Source: Blepharisma stoltei ATCC 30299
Lineage: Eukaryota; Protista; Ciliophora
Direction of reading: 5' to 3'
DNA: 64,000 nt
Assembly (NCBI GenBank): GCA_965603825.1
Contig: CBFDEM010000040.1
Coordinates: 310,001 to 374,000 of the forward strand
The notes below the pieces were generated by a model. That model was not told where the DNA came from. It searched no databases and saw only the letters and a program-made list of their open reading frames with translations. A program made the position numbers and the translations under genes. This document shows positions 1,067 through 35,871 of this stretch, in pieces; position 1 is the first letter of the stretch; each line of letters begins with the position of its first letter.

Positions 1067-4000
1067 ATGAGGCATACTCTTATTTATTTCGCCAAGATTT
1101 TACTTGCATACTCCACCTGTTTCCCGTATAATAGCTTCAACTATAGTGGAGCATGCTGATGCAACAAGGACTTTTATTTGGCTGAATCAAAAGTCTGTGT
1201 GGATGGGTGTCCTTCATTATTTATTGATAACTCTGATGGAGCCACGGGTTTTTACTCATGTAAAGCACCCAGTGGTGATACTGCAATCTTATTCACATTA
1301 GAATTCTCAAAAGTCCAAGACTTATCTGCAACTTACATTTCAAACTCTGTCAATTCAGCTGAGCAGTTTAATAATCTAAATTCATACCCATATAATTCTA
1401 CAGGCCAACTACCTCCGCTTCCAACACTTGATCGTGGCTTTTATTTTGCTAAAACGTCAAGCGCAACTAGTAACCAAAACCACGTCCCTGCTCTCTACTT
1501 TACGATAAACATATGAATTAAACCTAAACCACTTGTTTATGGGGAAATTCTTAATGCTATTAATAGTTCAACTCAATATTTAAGGTTTTATGCAAACAGT
1601 TCTGGTGCCTATATACTTGCCCTTGAAATTTATGATTCAAGTAATAACAGAGTAACAGCCACTTGAACTTATAGTATTAATTATACATCATATTGGCAGC
1701 AGTTATCAGTTGTTTTACAGCAAACTACATGCAGCGATGTAGTTGGGACTTTTTATCTTAACGGAGGAACTGGTTCGAGTGCATCTTTAACAAGCACAGA
1801 AGTAAGGTTTAAATCCGCTCTTTCTTATTCATGAATACTTGGGTCTGCGAATGGATTAGACTCCTTTACAGGATTTATTTATTGGCTCCAAGTTAGATTT
1901 GATACAACCCAATATTCTCCAACGATGTCAATATATATTGAATGCTTGAGTAGTCAATATTGAAATGGATCTTCTTGTCAAAACTGTGGCTCAAGCTGCT
2001 CTTCTTGGCCTTGGTGTGTGAGAGGCACTGATTGCAGTATTTGCTATACAAGTGATTGTGGCTCTTGCTCTGGATATTCTCTATCAATGTGCACTGTATG
2101 TACAACAGGTATACTTCCAGGATGTTGTGACATATTTGGGACAACTTGCACTCAAACTTGGTCAAATACTGCATGCTTCAATGGAAAAGTTCTCATTGGA
2201 GGAGTTTGCCTATACGCAACCCCATATGGACTTGAGAATTCCACAACTGTTTCTACGCAGGTTATAACAGCTGACTTTACAGGTCCATTTGCTGGAGTCT
2301 ATGGGTCAGCTTGAATTACAGGCAACAGCTCTTCAAGCTATAACTATTGGAATTCTCCAGAAGTGGCTGACCCATTTCCAGCAAAAAACAGAGGTCTCTA
2401 TTTTAATTATGATCAATATTTGAGTGGGGAAATAGCTCTCTCTCATACTTGAACTATTAGTATGTGGGTTTACCCAATGGGCGGAATAATGATAAGCCAT
2501 TCCTCAAATAATTTTTACATTGATTATGCTGGGACGATGACCTTTACCTTAGAAAAGTGAGATGGAACAACCATGACCAACACCCTTTCTCGCTCTATAA
2601 GTTCAAGTTGGGCATTTATTTCTTTTTCAGTTGAGTTTGCAAATAAAGTGACTACTATTAAGGGTTATATTGATAATATTTCTGGAACGCCTTCAACAAA
2701 TCAAAATTATGTATTTAGACTGCCAGTAGGGATGCTATACCTTGGCAAAGGATCGACAGGATTTAAAGGATATATCGCTTATTTTGTGCTATGGCAAGCA
2801 GCCATTAGTGATTTTTCAGCATTTTTTAGCATTAGTACTTTAACAAATGGATCAGTAGTAGTTTTGTGACCATGCGATTATTTGTATTACTTTGATGGAT
2901 CGAGCAATCTAAATTGTTTATCCTCATGCACAAGTGGCTGCATCAATGGAAGCTCTTGCAATTTGTGTGGCGATCCTTTATGCTCGTGCACATCATTTTC
3001 ATCAGGAGCTTGCACTTCGTGCGTTGCTAACGCTTCTGGTTCTCCCTGTGCTTGCCTAACTGGATATTATCTGAATGTAACTGGACTGCAGCAATCATGC
3101 TCTCCTTGTTATACAGGATGCTCTAACTGTACAAGCTCATCTTATAATTCTTGCACTTCCTGCAATTCAGGCTATTACTTGTACAATAATACTCTCTGCC
3201 TTCTCAATTGCCCTGGAGGATATTTTGGAGATTATAATCAGCGTAAATGCCTCTTCGTTTCAAATATTGAATTTAATGCTACTTTTTATGATAAAATAGA
3301 ACTTGGCCAAGTAGAATGCTTCAAAGTAGGATCAGATTCAGCAAATAAGTACCCTAATTATGATTCTGGAGATCCATATCCAGCATACTTAAGAGGCTAT
3401 TATTTTAATGGCACTACCTATCTTTCTACAAGTATGCTAACTGGCCCATATTTTTCTGTTTCTGTATGGGTAAATATAATAACAGCTGGAACGATTATAT
3501 CTAGAATTTTGAATGGAAATGAAATTTTTTGTTTAGAATTTTTGAGTGGGACGCTATCACCTAAGCTTTCTCTTATGTTGAGCGATAATTCTGTATTATC
3601 GACAGCCATATCAAGCAGCATACTTTCAAACAGTTGAAATTTTGTTGCATTTACTGGGAAAGTTGATACAGGTGGTACATATACAATAAACTCATATTAT
3701 AACGCAGTGAGCTCAACTCCTGCTACCTCTTCAAGCCTTGCTTTTTATCAGGATTTAGCCACTGGCACACTTTATATTGGGACAAAATCAACCTTAACTA
3801 GTGGCTTTTCTGGATTTCTATATAGTATTTGTCTTTTTAACACTGAAACTCTTTACAGCTATGATTTTATTACCTCCGGCTGCACTTCACCATGCACTCA
3901 ATGCTCAAAAGACTTCAATTGTTTTGATACTTGCTCGCTAACGACATTTAGAGATGGATCCTCTTGCACCAGCTGTTTGGGAACAGGAAACTGCAAAGGA

Positions 4001-7000
4001 TGCAGATTTACAGATACTTGTGGACTTTGCAAAACAAAACAATGCTATGATTGCACTTCTTTTTCAGGAAATTGCAACAGCTGTATTGCAAATGCAGGAA
4101 GTGATGGATATGGAGGGTGCCAATGCAATGCAAGTTATTATTGGGAAGCTTCTACAACGACTTGTGAGGCTTGCGATGTACTTTGCCAGAATTGCGTTCA
4201 AGGCAGCAGCTTTGAATGCGAAGCCTGCTACTTTGAAAAAATAACTGTAGGGAGCATATGCTTAAATGACTGTCCGTATGGCTACGATCCTTCTTGTTCT
4301 CCAGTTTCTAGCGCAGTAATTGACCAGATGTTTGATTCTGAATTTAGTGGGAGTTATGGGGATTTTATAACCGGAACATCTTCAAGCACATATCAACCAT
4401 TTAATTCTCCTGAAGCTTACGATCCTATTCCTGCATATAAAAGAGGGCTCTATTTTAATGGGAGTATGAACCTAACATCTTCAACCTCTATTTATCTTTC
4501 TTACGGATTTTCTATGGGGTTATGATTTTATGCAGTTACTAATGGAGATTTGTTAGAGAAACAGTCAAAACTTAAAGTTGGATCAGTAGGATCAGTGTGG
4601 CTAACAGTTGAAAGCACTAAACAAGTAGCAGAAGGGCATATCTTATCAACTTCAACTTTTACTGGATGGACTTATTTTTCATTTACTGTTAATTATGAAT
4701 CAGGGACCTCTAGTCTTGATCTTTACCTTAATGGAAATTTTGCTGGAGGAACCATTTTTGCAAATAAAATTTTTCGAGACCAAGCATCAACGTATATGCA
4801 GATAGGGAAAAGCAGCAGTTCTGGGTTCACTGGGTTTATTTATTATTTCCAGCTGTGAAATGTCCCACTTTCATCATTTTCTACGATTTTTAATAGCTTT
4901 TCATTTTGTGGATCTGGACAGGGATCTTCGTGCTTATGAGCCTGCGATATTTCAGCTTTTAAAAATGAATCCACATCCAGTTGCAGTAATTGCAATTCAT
5001 GCTCTAATGGATGTGTTAGAGCGAACGACTGCAATCTCTGTGATGATCAATTATGCTCTGTTTGCGGTGGCTTTGATCCGGGAAAATGTTCAACTTGCGT
5101 CCCCAATGCGTCACCAAGCTTAAATGGCTGTGCATGCAATTCAGATTATCAAAAATCAAATGATGGTCTTTCATGTGTAAAATGTGCGGCAGGATGCAAA
5201 AATTGCTCTGGAAATGGATTTTATCAATGCACAAGCTGTCTTAGTGGCTGATTCTTTTTAGACATTCAATGCCTAGAATCTTGCCCTACAGGATATACTC
5301 AAAACTCAACAACAAACAACTGTGATTATTCTGGCTCAGCAGTATCACTAAATTTTTCTAATTTAATTGTGCTAGACACTCTTTGGTGATGAAATGTCGG
5401 CTCTGAAGTAAACTCATACCCAATCTACGATGCCAATGATCCTTATCCTGCATATTTAAGGGGCTACTATTTCTTACCAGGCAAATATCTAACGAACAGC
5501 GTTACTCTTCCCCCTTCCTTTTCCATTTCTATCTGAATCCAACCTATAGGAGATGGCTATATTATAGGCAAATATATGGCAGGAAATACATGATATGTAA
5601 AAATTATAGAAACTTCAGGAAATCCAAAGCTTTCCCTTACCCTTTTAGATAAGCAAACAACTCTTTCTAACAAAGTAAGCACTAATATCCTCAATTCAGG
5701 TTGGGTTTTTATTTCATTTGACTGTGCAATAAACTCTAATGGGATAACGACAATAACTTCTTATCTAAATGGCAACCAACAAATTCAAACATCAACTTCT
5801 GATAATTCACTTTATCTTTTGGATAGTCCGTCAGATGTTTATATTGGTGATGGCTCAATGTCTGGGTCTACTATGCCTGGGTTTACTGGATTCTTATGGA
5901 AATTTACTATTTACCCTCAAAACAACAACGCATTAACTGATTTTCAAAACACTGGCTGCTTGAGCAGCTGTACAATATGCCCAGCTGATTTAAGCTGCCC
6001 AGACAACTGCCCAATATCTGAATATTTTGATGGCACATCTTGTGCTGCTTGTATTGCATCTGCTGACAAAGGATGCAGAAGTTCAAGTTTTAGCAGACTG
6101 TGCCGAGCCAAAGAATGCGCCACTTGCACAGAGTTTACTGGGGATAATTCATGCATAGACTGCATTACAAATGCTAGTAAAGATAGCATTGGGGAATGCA
6201 CCTGTAATTCTGATGCTTTCTGGGTGTCTGAATCAGAAACTTGTGAATTTTGCGATGCTCTTTGCTCAACATGTTTACAAACTGCTTATTTTGAATGCTC
6301 TGCCTGTAAGATGAACTATCAATTGGTAGGTAGTATTTGCTTAAATGGCTGCCCTTATGGGTTTGAAGCCCCCTGCGTATCAGTATCAACACCTGTCATT
6401 AATTTGTCTTTTAATTCTGGTTTTCAAGGCTCATATGGCATTTTAAATGCAGGAACAAACTCATCATCATTCTCTCCTTTTAATAGTCCAGAAACAGTTG
6501 ATCCGATTCCTGCATATCAGCGAGGTTTATATTTTAACGGAGACATGTATTTATTATCTTCAGTACCTGTTTTGCTTTCACATAGCTTTACAGTTGGAGC
6601 ATGACTTTATTCAATTGTTTCCAATGATTGACTAGAAAAGCAAACTCAAAAACTCACTTTTTCTACACAAGGTACTGTTAATGTTCAGATGGAAGACCCT
6701 ATGCAAGTCATAAACCTTAAAACTTTAAATTCAGCAACCCCCCTTTTTGAGTGAAACTATTTAGCAATCACCTTTGAGTATGTTTATGGAGTTACAACTA
6801 TAAAAATTTGTCTTAATAATGAATGTTTCATCGAAAATCCTTTCTCAAATGCAGTATTTAGAGATCTTACATCTTCAAACTTAATGATTGGCAAAAGCAG
6901 CAACTCTGGTTTTACTGGATTTATTAGTTCTTTCACTCTATGAAATATTCCAATTACTGATCTTTCAAGCATCATTAATGACTTTGTATGTGGCACAGGA

Positions 7001-10000
7001 CAGGGCTCCAATTGTTTAATATCTTGCGACTTATCAAAATATTGAGATGGGAGCACGTGCACGGCCTGCAACTCATGTAGCACTGGATGTGTTAGAGCTG
7101 GAACATGCAATATTTGCAATGACCCCTTGTGCTCGATATGTACAGGATTTGGCTCTGGGGCATGCACTCAATGTGCTGGAAATGCAAGTGGAGCTCCGAA
7201 TGCGTGCGTATGTAATGGAGGATATTGACTGCACTCATTAGCTTGCATACCATGCGAAAATTTTTTGAATCAGACAAGCGTGTCTGCTGGTTTTGATAGC
7301 AGCTATTCAAAAATTCAATTTAACTTCACTATTCCAGCTAATGCTTCGCCTAAATGTTGTTCTTGCTTATTTGACGCTCAAACTTTGCAGAGTTTTGGAT
7401 CTGGATATACGTGCTCTTACGCAACAGATTATAGTAGTTTGACAGTTTATCTAGGGCAAGGTTATACAATTTCCAAAGAAAGTATAGCATTTTTATCAGG
7501 ATTCTTAAAAAATTCTGATTTGGTTTGTGGAAATCCTCCAACCAATTTTTCAGTCCCAATTTCTCTTCCAAGTCCGATTCCAAGTCCAAGCTTTACATTT
7601 TCAGCTCCCAAAACCCTCTCAATTCTCTGTGAGACCTTAAAATTGACTGCAGTTATTGGAAATGATCTGCCATATGAGCAATTCAAGTGGACATTTTCTT
7701 CAGCCCCTGCTAATGCAGCCATATCCGCATACTCCACTCAATATAGCAATACTTATAGTGATATCACAATTCCTAAAAGTTCACTTTTTGACAGCATTAT
7801 ATTTGCATCTTTTGCAGCAAAGAATAACTTTGGTACTGAAATTTCAGTTTCCCAATCTATAAACGTGACTTCATCACTATTTTTGACTATAAATTTCAAT
7901 ACTTTAGAATCTACATATATTTCTCGACTGAAGTCATTTTCTATATCTATTTCATCGATTCAAGCTTGCACAATCTCTAGCAGCATTAGTGTCACTTGAA
8001 GCATTGGACTGGTTACTAATAACATTACAAGCATAGATGAAGTGTCATTGAGAGGCAACCAGACTTCTCAAAATGTATTGATTATTCCTCCAAAAGTTCT
8101 ACCAGCTTCAACTAATATCACATTTATATTCCGCGCAAAAGACTTGGTTTATCTATCTGAAGGAGAAGCAAGTGTGATGGTACAAACTGACGTGTCTGAT
8201 CCTGTCATTTTGTTCAATCGAACTGATGGGCCGGCAGGGGTTAGTCAAGATTTATTAATTGATGCTGGCAGTTCTTATGATCCTGATGGCAAGTCACAGC
8301 TCAGTTTTGAATGGTTGTGTGTATATAATGCAGCTGATTGCTCGACTTTTATTTCAAATCCGTTAAGTTCACTTATGAAAATTTCAGCGAATTCACTTTC
8401 TTCAGGGATCACTTATAACTTCACTCTAATTCTGACTAAAACTACCCTGAATCCGATAAGTACAACAATAAAAGTATCTAAAAGTATATATATAACGTCT
8501 CAGCAAGGTACCGTTCCATCTGTAAATATAGTAGAAATTGGAAACTCAAACGTAGGGATTGTGAATCCTGACTTGGCATATCGCGTCCAAGCTCAAGGAT
8601 CGTTCACTTCAATTCTTTGATCAGCCAAAGGAGATCTGCCTATTTTGTTTTCAAGCCCTTTAATTTATGCTGACCTTGTAATTGCACAAAATTCATTGTT
8701 GGCAGGCTCAAAGTACACTTTAGAAGCTCTAATAAATCAAAACTTTGTATTTACCTGAACATTCTATGTGAATCAAGGACCAAAAGGTGGAAGTTTATCT
8801 GTAACTCCAAGTTCAGGATATGAAATGACGACACAATTTTCAATTGAAGCATTAAATTGGGTAGATCCTGAAGATAACATTCCGATCCAGTATGCATTTG
8901 GCTATACTATTAGTGATATCTACCAAGTTATTAGCTCAAAAAACACCTCTTCCTTGATTTATTCAACTTTTCCTTACTCAAGCAAACAAATAATGATATC
9001 CGTAGACGTTTATGACTCTCTATTATCCAAAGTGACAACGTTTCAAGGCATTACCGTATCGTATCAGGCAGATGCAAACGTTGACCAATATGTAGATGAC
9101 GTAAAATCTCAATTAAATTCGCCCGATTTAAACCCGATTTCAATTCCCAAGCTCGTTTCTGATCTCTCTTCACTATCATTAAATAGGAATTACATTGTGA
9201 ATGGAGATTATTCAACAGTAGATCAGCAGATTCAGGACTCATACAACATAGCTATTGATAAAATATCATCCTATACACAAAACACAGATCCTTATGACCC
9301 GAATACCTATACAACCGTCTTCAGTATGCTAAAAGTTATTACTTCAAATCCAAGCATTAACAGTTATGATAATATCGCAAAGGTGGCTGATATAATCAAG
9401 GAAGTTGTTAGCAGCCTGGATGGGAAGGTCCAGCTAGATGATACACAAGTTCAAACCTTCATTGGAATTTGCAATAATAACTTCCAAGTCAACAGCAGTT
9501 CAGTATCAAATCAAACAGACTCCATATCTTCGATTGAAGGCAATATAAAAAGTGTTGGCTCTGCTTTACTAAATGGAATGTCATCAAGAGAAAGCAAACT
9601 TTTCCTTGATGAAAAAATCAGTGTTGAGTTGTCAAAGCAGCCAAATTCTGTACTCTCGAATTTTTCGTCAGAAATTATGGGAGCTTCAATAACTTTAGCA
9701 TCAAACACAGAAAGTTTTATCAGTAATGACTATGTGGGCACAAGCTTCGTGCTATATGACCCTATTCCTGGCGGTGCAAATGCGAGTTTTTCTTTAGTTT
9801 CTTTTACTCTTACAGATTTATCAACCCATGATGCTATCCCATTAAACAATACGAGTTATAACTATATTTCAATCCCAGTTGAATTTATAAATAACAGCTC
9901 TAATGCAACACTAAATTGTTCTTATTTAGAAGAAGGTCTGTCTAAATGAAAAACAGATGGATGTGTTTTAGATTCGTTCAATACTACTGTTATCATTTGC

Positions 10001-11062
10001 AAGTGCAGCCACTTATCAATTTTTTCAGCGTTTTTTGGAGGTGCTGCAAGTACTGCCCAGTCAAGTAATATTGGGGATACAGTGAACGTTAACGCTTTTT
10101 CTTCAATTGACTGAGATACTAACGCAATTGGGCTCTATTTTTGTGCAGCGCTTTTGATTTTCTATATTGTCCTAACCATGCTAGCATGCAAGCTCGATAA
10201 AAAGGAAGCAGAAGAAGAGCTCGATATAATAAAGGGTGCAGCAGCAGCTGAAGATATCTCAAAAAAGCCTGATGAATTAACAGAAAGATCTGAGGATATG
10301 ACTTACAGGACAGATGATTCGATTGCTCACAATTTCCGTCACAAAATAGGCTATGATCCTACTATCCATTCAACAGAGCAAAATACAAGTCAAGAAATGA
10401 GTAGGGCTGATTCTATAGCGTCTATTCAAGTTGAAAATATTGATGTCAAACCAACAAAGAAAAGGATGAGCTTTTTTGAATTTGTTGGGAAAAATCACGA
10501 TTTTATCAGCATTTTTTTACCCGATAGTCAATTTTCTCATAGCGTGCGAGTAACCGCATATACTGTTTCCTTGCTCGGGAATATGTTTTTTATAGGACTG
10601 TTTTATCAAGATGGAGAACAAAAAGATGACGACAGTGATAGCATGAATTTCAGTGAAGCGATTAACAACTATTCATTTCGAGACTTTTGGGTTATGGTAT
10701 ATTCTACAGGTATCATGATCCCGATAGCTATTATTTTGAGAATTTTAGCAAAAAGAAATATTAAAGAGTATAAAGATCCAAAAAAGCAGAACAAAATAAA
10801 GAAAAGGGAGAAGTGGAAAAAATTCGGATTTTTCATGCTATCATGGAGCCTTATGGGGTATTTTTGCTGGTCTATTATATTATTTTCTATTCAATTCCAG
10901 CTGAGTCTTACATATAAATGGATTTGCAACACAAGTGTTAGTTATGGCTCTGATATTTTTGTAATGCCATTTGTTAAAATGCCAATTAAAGTCTTCTTTG
11001 TATGACTATTCACCAAGCTAACGATGGCTCTTGGATTTTCAAGCTCAAAAGACAAAAAATAA
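1067..11062 (+). CDS. Giant (3331 aa) polycystin-1-like surface receptor: signal peptide, 6x (LamG-like + Cys-rich furin/EGF-like) modules, REJ, GAIN/GPS, 5 TM
   Basis: The ORF-track fragments at 1178, 2018, 2573, 2882, 3707, 4550, 5819, 7265, 8042, 8768 and 10154 share one frame and end in TGA; the gaps I translated contain only TGA. ATG at 1067 (MRHTLIYFAKILLAYS), TAA at 11060-11062. REJ motifs DAGSSYDPDG..LSFEWLC and NQGPKGGSLSVTPSSG; GPS CSYL..WKTDGC...CKCSHLSIF; five hydrophobic helices. Confidence 0.9.
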
Positions 11063-11237
11063 TTGGAATAGGCTATTTTACCTAATCTAATAAAAGTATT
11101 TTATTTTTAAAAAAATGCATTTAAATTATTAGCATAAATATAATTATTAGTATATTATATAGTATGAAAGCTCTAAATAATAAAATATTAGCTAAAGGCT
11201 CAGTCCTATAAAAAAACTAAAGATAATAATTGTTTAT

Positions 11238-12551
11238 TTAAGATAAATTAAGTCCTTTGGCCAGTATTAAAAGCAGCTCTCTATCAACTGATTTCAAATG
11301 TTCATATATTGTTTTCCTCATTGCTGCCGCATATGAAAAAATTATCTTTTCCCTTTGTGTTTTTGCATTTTTCCTATCCCTTTCTACTTGTCTTAAGCTT
11401 ATCATATTCTCAACTCTTGGAATTATTTGCTTTCTATAGCTCCATAAAGTTTGAATGAAAGCATGCTTTTCATTTTCTTCTTGGATTTTTTCATAAAATT
11501 CATGAAGGCTTTCTGTTTCAGGGACATCAAATATTGCATTTTGTAGCCATTTGATGCTGAAAAGCTTAATCAAATTTTTGTTCGGCTGGCCTGGATATAA
11601 TCTATAGTTGCAGCTATTTTCTGATGCTTTATACTCAAAACAAGCAACATCAGAAAATGTCAAAATCATAAAATCATTTGGATTTTCTTCAATTACAAAC
11701 CCAAAGGCTGTTAATAAGTCAAAATTATTTAGCCCAGAGTTATATTGATAGAAAAACTCATTCCCTGCAGATTGATTCCATCCTGCTACTATGGCAAATG
11801 CAGGAACTGGAGTATGTGTCCATATAACAACTCGGCCCTTAAAAGTAGAAGACCTTGGCTGATACCAATGGTTAGCTAAATCTAAGAGTGATATCATAAC
11901 AGAAAGCTCTTCTTCATCTTTGTATTCATCATCATCTATAGTAATTTGAAACAGTTTTAAAATTGTATCTTTAGAGAAGTTATATGATCGGCTCTTAACC
12001 ATTGATGCAGCTCATAAGTAGGCATCATATTCTAATGCTTCTTTAGGGACTCCAATTAGCTTGCCTACCCTGTGAATAAAGTTATTGTGACTCTCAGTAA
12101 GATTTTTTGTTATAACTTCTCTGGGAAGGCTATATAAGTCATATTTATGAAATAATGCAAATTCTTCATCGCTTCAGAAGTCTGGAGTGTCAATATCTAC
12201 AGGCAATGAATGGATGTATTCTGTGATGAAATTTCCTCTTTTCCCTATAAATTTTTCATATAAGATCCTCGCAACTAGTTTTTCATAGGAAGGCAGGCCT
12301 TTTAAGTAAGGACTGAACTCAAAAGGCTCGATACTGCATAAAGACAGTACCGGCGCACTTTTGAGAACAATATCACCTTCGTGCACATCTGAATTTAATT
12401 TAATTCCAAGCCCGCGTCCCTCAAAATAAGTAATTGTATGGTTCATTGAATTGATTTCTAAGGCTTCGTAGAATTTTAGAAGTCCTTCAGGAGTAGATGT
12501 GACGGGAACTGCTTGAGCTGAAGCTAGGAAAGCCAAAACTAGAGTTAGCAT
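11238..12551 (-). CDS. SET-domain (Rubisco-LSMT/SETD3-like) lysine methyltransferase with N-terminal signal peptide
   Basis: Two same-frame ORFs joined through TGA; motifs GRGLG, YLWAASMVKSRS, LLDLANH, NFDLLTAFGF..NPND; N-terminus MLTLVLAFLASAQA. Confidence 0.8.
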
Positions 12552-12727
12552 TATAATCACAATATAATGAATTTTTATAATAAAATATGAATTTTTAAGT
12601 ACTATACCCTTCTTCTTTTGCTATTTAGCAACTACTAATCTAATCTTAATATTAAGAGCCAGATCTCAGATCAAGAAAACCCATTTATATAGAATTATTA
12701 AAACTTGATAGTTATTTTCTTTCATAT

Positions 12728-33620: not shown

Positions 33621-34190
33621 ATGGATAGAGGAGAATAGTATGCTAAAATTAGTGACTTTTTATTAAAAATTGTACTGCTAGGATATAAAAGTTCTGGAAG
33701 ATCTAATATTCTACGCAGATATACTGATGAAGCTTTTGAAGAAAAAGAGCAAAGATATAATTATGATTTTGTAAGTTTCATGAAGAAAATTGAAAGCAAA
33801 GTAATACAAGGAAAATTTTTGAGGCTTCAGATATGAGACACCAGCGGTACAGATAGATCCATACCGTTACATAGGGCTTATTTTAAATCAGCGAACGGTT
33901 TTGCAATTATAATAGATTTAACAAACCCTAACTCATTTGATAGTGCATTATATTGAAAAAGCGAAATTGATAATTATTTTTTAGGTAAAAGTCCAGAAAT
34001 TATATTAATTGGAAATAAAGCAGATCTTGAAAATCAGAGATTTTTCACATTTGAAGAAGCCAAAAAGCTTGCAGATAGTTTAGAAATGTTTTATATTGAA
34101 GTATCAGCAAAGACGTACTGAAATATTGAAAATTCATTTGAAATTTTGCTTAGAAAAATCATACACAGATACTCTAAGAAGGCAAATTAA
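33621..34190 (+). CDS. Atypical Rab-like GTPase, copy A (introns 33638-33652 and probably 33771-33785)
   Basis: Not in the ORF track; spliced [23 protein letters not shown]...DFKI..LQIWDTSG..GNKAD..EVSAK; no C-terminal Cys. Confidence 0.85.
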
Positions 34191-35301: not shown

Positions 35302-35871
35302 ATGGATAGAGGAGAATAGTACGCTAAACTTAGTGACTTTTTATTAAAAATTATACTGCTAGGATATACAAGTTCTGGAAGATCTAATATTATACGCAGA
35401 TATACAGATGAAGCTTTTGAAGAAAACGAACTAGGATATAATTATGATTTTGTAAGTTTCATGAAGAAAATTAAAAACAAAGTAATACAAGGAAAATTTT
35501 TGAGGCTTCAGATATGAGACACCAGCGGTACAGATAGATTTATATCGTTACATAGGGCTTATTTTAAATCAGCGAACGGTTTTGCAATTATAATAGATTT
35601 AACAAACCCTAACTCATTTGATAGTGCATTATATTGAAAAAGCGAAATTGATAATTATTTTTTAGGTAAAAGTCCAGAAATTATATTAATTGGAAATAAA
35701 GCAGATCTTGAAAATCAGAGATTTTTCACATTTGAAGAAGCCAAAAAGCTTGCAGATAGTTTAGAAATGTTTTATATTGAAGTATCAGCAAAGACGTACT
35801 GAAATATTGAAAAATCTTTTGAAATTTTGCTTAGAAAAATTATACACAGATACTGTAAGAAGGCAAATTAA
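35302..35871 (+). CDS. Atypical Rab-like GTPase, copy B (introns 35319-35333 and probably 35452-35466)
   Basis: Paralogue of 33621-34190 with intact frame; P-loop GYTSSGRS; ends RYCKKAN. Confidence 0.85.

Follow-up and report, generated by a model that had tools for sequence, protein, structure and literature searches.

Human polycystin-1 (PC1, the product of PKD1; 6A70, 8Z6B and related structures) carries, in order, an REJ domain, a GAIN domain with an HL/S-T cleavage site, a stalk, a first transmembrane (TM) helix, a cytoplasmic insert holding a PLAT domain, the helices TM2-TM5, a second membrane half, TM6-11, which includes the pore and the TOP domain, and a coiled-coil/G-protein tail; its ectodomain includes LRR, WSC, C-lectin and PKD repeats. 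The function of PC1 is still an open question: it could be a receptor, part of a channel or both, and the purpose of its first five helices is equally unsettled. The sea-urchin sperm proteins suREJ1 and suREJ2 are REJ surface receptors of animals that lack the channel half and are described with one or two TM helices. In adhesion G-protein-coupled receptors (GPCRs) such as latrophilin, BAI, ADGRF1 and CELSR, the membrane domain is, as in PC1, immediately preceded by a GAIN domain; some of them also bear LamG domains, and HL/S is a cleaved variant in EMR2/CD97. In ciliates, GAIN domains have been known since 2012 (PMC3321182), and our literature search found no paper on the family described here or on polycystin-like proteins of heterotrichs. 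Here we describe a gene in a 64,000-nucleotide stretch of the Blepharisma stoltei ATCC 30299 genome (contig CBFDEM010000040.1, positions 310,001 to 374,000; the whole stretch is called the window below), the product of which is a homologue of the PC1 receptor half, a "receptor-only" protein without PLAT or channel half. We think it probable that the protein is a giant surface glycoprotein with its N-terminus outside, which signals via a partner in the membrane.

The coding sequence occupies window positions 1067-11062 on the + strand, as do all features of this gene given below, and consists of 3331 sense codons followed by TAA in a single frame with no detected intron. A stop codon lies two codons 5' of the ATG at 1067, so that the start is not in doubt. 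The frame contains 30 TGA codons and neither TAA nor TAG; the two alternative frames hold 187 and 285 stops, with TAA, TAG and TGA all present. Judged from the sequence, TGA codes for Trp in this gene: it accounts for 30/55 Trp codons, the TGA at residue 2961 is the near-invariant Trp of the GPS motif, five further TGA codons coincide with a strand Trp of Laminin_G_3 in five repeat modules, and two stand at Trp positions also found in the closest paralogues. Searches were made first with TGA-free pieces and later with P0001 and its sub-ranges, P0001 being a Blepharisma stoltei protein of 3331 aa present in NCBI and UniRef that was retrieved when all of 1.84 billion representative proteins were scanned. 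The translation with TGA as Trp is identical to P0001, residue for residue; therefore the public record keeps the gene unsplit. An earlier note made from the sequence had proposed this single 3331-codon frame, and the frame counts, the TGA codons at conserved Trp positions and the identity to P0001 bear it out. Its further statement that standard-code annotation splits the gene into more than ten pieces is hypothetical and does not describe the public record, which is one unsplit protein.

The membrane part is, in its predicted structure, a five-helix bundle of the PC1 TM1-TM5 type. TM1 (residues 3021-3043, 10127-10195) aligns to TM1 of PC1 and is followed by a cytoplasmic TM1-TM2 loop (10196-10495), in the place of PLAT in PC1, which is disordered in the model and unconserved in the alignment. 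A His motif before TM2 (H3144, HDFISIF) and TM2 itself, ending in GLFY (10496-10609), align to the PC1 segment 'KHIWLSIW...RIQRAT'. TM3 (residues 3204-3228, 10676-10750) starts with a conserved DFW, a basic cytoplasmic helix runs into TM4 (residues 3238-3276, 10778-10894), and TM5 (residues 3279-3321, 10901-11029), with conserved Trp3285 and Thr3282, leaves about 10 cytoplasmic residues before the stop codon at 11060-11062. The AlphaFold model of the module has a predicted local distance difference test score (pLDDT) of 80.5 and a predicted template-modelling score (pTM) of 0.74, and its five long helices uphold the five TMs noted earlier; by Kyte-Doolittle hydropathy there are four strong TM segments and a weaker TM2. 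The 11 best Foldseek matches of this model were all PC1 chains. VIA-align superposed it on PC1 chains with Z of 14.1-18.3 over 175-227 residues, at a root-mean-square deviation mostly of 3.6-4.6 Å, and model residues 6-313 fell on PC1 3067-3620 (TM1 to TM5). When the model was compared exhaustively with 48,161 PDB representatives, PC1 was the sole chain with Z>=8 (16.8) and the runner-up scored 7.1; a search of the ESM Atlas by fold gave nothing above a template-modelling score of 0.32.

Sequence profiles give a second, independent link to PC1. phmmer of the TM piece found no match among PDB sequences, and only the family profile reached PC1. This profile was built from alignment A1 of 28 members of the REJ-GAIN-5TM family, in which the studied gene is a founding sequence and not an independent test. 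Against 177,635 PDB sequences its three best matches were PC1 chains (E 0.01), in three collinear stretches on TM1, TM2-3 and TM5, and the TM2 and TM5 motifs that had been said to follow the PC1 pattern aligned to the matching PC1 segments. A1 is marked by the motifs H..L.SIF (with the His before TM2), GLFY, DFW, WSI..FSI.F and W..NT, and has a variable TM1-TM2 loop; the studied gene is 18-43% identical to the 27 other members.

Directly before the membrane bundle stands a GAIN domain (residues about 2672-2992, 9080-10042), assigned from AlphaFold, Foldseek and profile results, made up of a helical subdomain A and a beta-sandwich subdomain B in which the GPS lies. AlphaFold modelled residues 2670-3045 (pLDDT 86.2) as the helical subdomain, the beta-sandwich and then TM1, and Foldseek matched this model to the GAIN domains of BAI2 (5e-12), BAI3 (6e-12) and latrophilin (1e-10), so that structure comparison returned both a GAIN fold and a PC1-like bundle. 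GPS PF01825 scored 24.1 bits on its own piece against a cut-off of 22.5. The His-Leu-Ser triad is intact, as the earlier note had read it: the predicted autoproteolysis site His2982-Leu2983/Ser2984 (10010-10018), with SIFSAFF as the predicted new N-terminus, lies in the model in the turn between the last two GAIN strands, where GAIN domains cut. In alignment A2, which covers the GAIN/GPS region of 16 family members, none of the four GPS cysteines varies, the Trp is near-invariant and HL(S/T) is kept in 12/16. The A2 profile matches solved adhesion-GPCR GAIN sequences at 2e-9 with the CxCxHL(S/T)xFS motifs aligned; phmmer of the REJ/GAIN piece against PDB sequences gave chance matches only. From the predicted fold and the intact HL/S, the GAIN domain of this protein may well cleave itself. 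Adhesion GPCRs thus share with it the GAIN fold, the cleavage motif and the position of GAIN directly before the membrane domain, but the Blepharisma protein has five PC1-type helices in place of a secretin-like 7-TM domain, and its model gave Z<=5 with GPCR chains (class B <=4.9) versus 17-18 for PC1.

Between the cleavage site and TM1 lies the stalk (10016-10126), which in A2 has a conserved SNIGDT motif and includes the polar Asn3019. By the register of the profile alignment, Asn3019 and Thr3282 sit at PC1 Asn3074 and Ser3585, between which a hydrogen bond from the stalk base to the outer end of TM5 was found in simulations and supported by mutagenesis (PMC9171645). Within the family, the Asn3019 position is N/S/T in 16/18 sequences and the Thr3282 position is S/T in 20/28. 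The placement of the ectodomain and the positive-inside loops indicate an N-out topology, which puts the most conserved bundle residues at the outer ends of TM2-5 (conservation of the outer halves 0.69, 0.59, 0.59 and 0.45, versus 0.49, 0.43, 0.45 and 0.33 for the inner halves). These features could fit a receptor that works by itself. In it, cleavage would expose the stalk, the stalk would engage the five helices, and these would couple, without help from a channel, to an effector in the cytoplasm, for instance a G protein. The intact HL/S, the conserved stalk and outer face, and the polar pair matching PC1 N3074-S3585 would suit such a receptor, as would the conserved pre-TM2 His motif and basic TM3-TM4 loop, both of which face the cytoplasm. 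We nevertheless judge it quite improbable, since the G-protein activation motif of PC1 is in the C-tail (PMC9171645) that is absent here, the bundle has no likeness to 7-TM domains by the Z values given above, and the cytoplasmic surface is small. A reading with a partner in the membrane, which we prefer, is proposed because the protein has almost no cytoplasmic tail.

Of the PKD1-family features, REJ, GAIN/GPS next to TM1 and the TM1-TM5 bundle are all present. Three others are not, namely PLAT, the 11-TM channel half and the coiled-coil/G-protein C-tail, in place of which only about 10 residues follow TM5; therefore we do not file the protein as a polycystin-1. PLAT PF01477 has no match in the whole protein, and no Pfam family matches the TM1-TM2 loop at E<=10, in agreement with the earlier view that no PLAT is recognisable. 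That note had also called the loop acidic and disordered. Disorder is supported by the model, with pLDDT <50 at 3074-3097 and 3099-3127 and no secondary structure over 3066-3135, and the loop has the lowest conservation in the family alignment; its acidity is only mild (13 D+E versus 11 K+R over 3066-3135). PKD_channel PF08016 likewise has no match in the protein, which ends, as had been claimed, before the channel half.

The same data bear on the explanation that this is an ordinary full-length PC1 orthologue with PLAT and channel half missed through mis-assembly, mis-annotation or splicing. Heterotrich introns are tiny and easily missed, which is the point in its favour. However, the TAA stands about 10 residues past TM5, the next open reading frame (ORF), 11238-12620, is on the - strand and convergent to the receptor gene, and no channel ORF was seen in the 6 kb of the window after the gene. 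Contigs from four runs of one study, whose RNA nature is a guess, span 6800-11050 at a depth of 3-10 with no joints; this check covers the 3' 4.2 kb of the gene. In all four runs the contig coverage is zero at about 11050-11212 and then about 60 over the convergent neighbour, a step at the gene border that points to RNA whose 3' end coincides with the stop codon. The joint-free contigs and the unsplit P0001 speak against a locus broken into separate genes. The long relatives, which come from two genera and from metagenomes, stop no more than about 80 residues after TM5. Since the next gene is convergent and those relatives that end near TM5 have so little beyond it, a channel could not be supplied by any exon downstream. 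The three refutation tests of the earlier note therefore all turned out in favour of its reading. Moreover, PKD_channel does not lie downstream on the same strand at any receptor-half locus, and PLAT has no match anywhere in the genome, in a search made without a positive control. The full-length explanation therefore fails on these data, and we give it next to no weight.

To place the protein in its family, a phmmer search with the 296-aa TM piece was run over the 1.84 billion representatives and returned 81 proteins only, with the TM-module match at the extreme C-terminus of every long one. When ten relatives (from Blepharisma, Stentor, metagenomes, EukProt and Logan) were scanned with Pfam, 9/10 had REJ and/or GPS and some had LamG, while PLAT and PKD_channel were each found in 0/10 and one fragment had no match at all. 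Relatives are already deposited under automatic names such as 'PKD/REJ-like domain-containing protein'. The Stentor coeruleus and Blepharisma stoltei proteins OMJ65903, OMJ95104, CAG9330196 and CAG9312590 resemble the studied one in REJ, GAIN/GPS and the C-terminal 5-TM module (28-44% identity); they depart from it in length (1,659-4,773 aa) and in which N-terminal modules they carry and how many. A homologue search with residues 2391-3331 returned, apart from one weak match, nothing but the two closest paralogues; these paralogues, P0002 and P0086, also have LamG arrays.

In the Blepharisma genome (41.46 Mb in 64 contigs), the A1 profile gave 30 matches at about 25 loci, and the family also occurs in Stentor. 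REJ had 52 matches in this genome and PKD_channel 35, the latter representing at least 35 PKD2-like channel loci. No receptor half was found fused to a channel or followed by one downstream on the same strand, and therefore receptor halves and PKD2-like channels are always separate genes here. Two loci have the two kinds of gene close together. At C58:568025-578517 a receptor half lies within about 10 kb of a channel that is upstream on the same strand, and at C54:612399-626297 one lies within about 10 kb of two channel matches that are downstream on the opposite strand. A linkage of the two kinds of gene was considered from these two pairs and rejected as not significant; it is suggestive at most.

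The ectodomain begins with a probable signal peptide, read by eye from the sequence (residues 1 to about 17, 1067-1117, hydrophobic core LIYFAKILLAYS). Six modules of about 345 aa follow (1109-7351; self-BLAST and Pfam), each made of a LamG domain (Laminin_G_3) and a Cys-rich spacer in an [A-B]x3 arrangement, with approximate limits at residues 15-353 (M1), 354-689 (M2), 690-1035 (M3), 1036-1384 (M4), 1385-1728 (M5) and 1729-2095 (M6). The modules were detected with the protein cut into chunks, as whole-protein self-BLAST gave the identity match alone; over residues 15-2095 the chunks showed repeats offset by about 345 and about 690 aa with identity up to 48%. Pfam placed Laminin_G_3 PF13385 above its gathering score on five stretches of the whole protein (107.2 bits, 1.1e-30). 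Scanned singly, M1, M3 and M6 exceed the Laminin_G_3 cut-off and M2 falls below it (21.8 versus 27.6 bits); M4 and M5 have no Laminin_G_3 match alone and are linked by 33-48% identity to M2, M3 and M6. On the TGA-free pieces of the N-terminal half Pfam found no LamG, because the pieces cut through domains. The Cys-rich spacers contain 13-18 Cys per 100 residues and match no Pfam family over threshold, the sole hint being GF_recep_IV (growth-factor-receptor domain IV) at E 0.011. REJ follows at residues 2391-2684 (8237-9118; PF02010, 1.1e-29), its match spans profile positions 97-435, and it was recovered also on TGA-free pieces and in the scan of the organism's own genome. Both the six LamG-like/Cys-rich modules and the REJ domain of the earlier reading are thereby recovered.

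An ectodomain of this kind raises the main rival, namely a non-signalling adhesin or coat protein of the feeding, mating-contact, cyst or pellicle surface, in which the LamG/Cys-rich array and REJ would build up a glycocalyx or an adhesive layer, the 5-TM module would be an anchor and GAIN cleavage would shed the ectodomain. The tail of about 10 residues and a sole long cytoplasmic loop that is disordered and unconserved agree with this explanation, as do the 53 N-glycosylation sequons in the protein, the loss of the cleavage triad in some members and the size of the family, whose ectodomains of 1,500 to >9,000 residues are typical of surface and adhesion repertoires. Against it, a plain anchor needs one helix, whereas five helices with fixed conserved residues persist across Blepharisma, Stentor and uncultured protists at 18-25% identity, and conservation down to this level speaks for the bundle having a role of its own. 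We regard the adhesin as unlikely, and as the rival to be taken most seriously.

The reading that we favour, a homologue of the PC1 receptor half signalling via a membrane partner, would work as follows. The GAIN domain would cut itself in maturation, leaving an ectodomain of about 2983 residues held non-covalently on a membrane fragment of about 348 residues. The lectin-like modules might bind glycans, particles or other cells, or bear mechanical load, and a pull or binding event could then be passed through the GAIN junction and stalk to the outer face of the 5-TM bundle. From there the bundle would act on a membrane partner. The most plausible candidate is a separately encoded PKD2-like channel subunit, onto which the bundle might dock as TM1-5 of PC1 dock onto the channel-like half of PC1. 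The many PKD2-like channel loci in the genome are consistent with the partner step.

Several points weigh against this reading. Taken alone, the sequence match between the 5-TM module and PC1 is weak, though specific (18 bits, E 0.01), and the case rests mainly on predicted structure. We infer cleavage, surface location, ligand binding and signalling from the protein's predicted features, and expression is backed by contigs of presumed-RNA runs over the 3' 4.2 kb only. HL/S is lost in some paralogues, the upstream neighbour included, and therefore cleavage is not essential to the family. In the modelled tethered-agonist route of PC1, the signal passes from the stalk to the TOP domain, the pore loop and the C-tail (PMC9171645), and TOP domain, pore loop and C-tail are all absent here. 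The earlier reading of a tethered-agonist-type receptor needs changing on this point: any agonist-type signalling must be directed at the five-helix bundle or, in trans, at a partner. Receptor and channel genes show no pairing, with only two loci within 10 kb versus about 0.5 expected by a rough estimate. Finally, channel cores of the PC1 family without TM1-5 still conduct in animals (PMC8357825), and therefore a modulating role of TM1-5 is not established even in animals.

Set beside human PC1, the Blepharisma protein keeps the order REJ, GAIN with an HL/S-T site, stalk, TM1, cytoplasmic insert and TM2-TM5, together with the His motif before TM2, the Trp of TM5 and the polar pair of stalk base and TM5, and its bundle superposes on 3067-3620. 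It differs in having no PLAT, no TM6-11 with TOP and pore and no coiled-coil/G-protein tail, and in carrying LamG and Cys-rich modules where PC1 has LRR, WSC, C-lectin and PKD repeats. From suREJ1 and suREJ2, as these are described, it is set apart by a complete TM1-5 bundle in place of one or two TM helices.

The family thus consists of naturally occurring proteins with REJ, GAIN and TM1-5 but without PLAT, channel half or tail. It could show whether the receptor half does anything by itself and whether it is able to act in trans with PKD2-type channels; it is also relevant to a possible origin of animal PC1 by gene fusion. One could imagine a split polycystin, in which the heterotrich receptor halves (about 25 genes) dock in trans on at least 35 PKD2-like channels and gate or target them, with animal PC1 as a later fusion in which PLAT was inserted into the TM1-TM2 loop. 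We put this forward as a rather doubtful proposal. If it were true, the TM1-5 bundle would be a self-sufficient coupling module that could be studied alone in Stentor or Blepharisma. Stentor is a large single cell open to RNA interference, and large single cells such as these are also open to electrophysiology. For ciliate biology, members of the family are candidates for the receptors that sense mechanical stimuli, prey or mating partners. A role as receptor for gamone-1, a glycoprotein pheromone, was considered and dropped, as nothing bears on it. In annotation, 'PC1-type N-terminal TM domain' can now serve as the label for the C-terminal module of 'PKD/REJ-like' proteins.

Some members of the family show features of their own. 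The upstream neighbour of the studied gene, C40:295656-308684, lies on the same strand, ends 1317 bases before the start of the window and 2.4 kb upstream of the studied gene, and encodes 4342 aa. It is a divergent family member (A1 profile 1e-14) with a degenerate GPS that has lost the Cys pair and HL/S. TGA makes up 1/35 of its Trp codons versus 30/55 in the studied gene, a sharp contrast between adjacent paralogues. Four other REJ loci, C25:327659-330661, C25:508107-511076, C37:117358-120399 and C37:90202-91350, lie in frames of 9,202, 5,724, 5,879 and 6,138 codons with zero TGA, which if real single genes would be among the largest in the genome; 3/4 of them end in the 5-TM module, the exception being C37:90202-91350. 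In a subfamily of five proteins from metagenomes and Logan (P0022, P0023, P0033, P0035 and P0045), the TM1-TM2 loop contains a conserved block at A1 columns about 200-270, with a consensus of roughly GVH..I.N..INLE..KP...F.FRV..NAYIP, which may be a small folded insert; in P0022, P0035 and P0045 the block had no match to Pfam, PLAT included. By features, the nearest ESM Atlas cluster to P0001:2690-3331 is a 'GPS domain-containing protein (fragment)' with a score of 0.95 and 103 members. The cluster has few taxon labels, for the most part Nucleocytoviricota, and could represent mis-binned ciliate DNA or capture of a GAIN protein by a giant virus.

On the 3' side, the convergent ORF 11238-12620 (-) has 461 codons, an N-terminal hydrophobic leader and, in the four runs, about 10x deeper coverage than the receptor gene. 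ORFs beyond it, read by eye, look like Mpv17-type, DHHC and MORN-repeat proteins. Further along the window, two 184-codon ORFs at 33639-34190 and 35320-35871 (+) have equal TGA/TGG counts, lie 1,681 bases apart and have the appearance of a tandem duplication.

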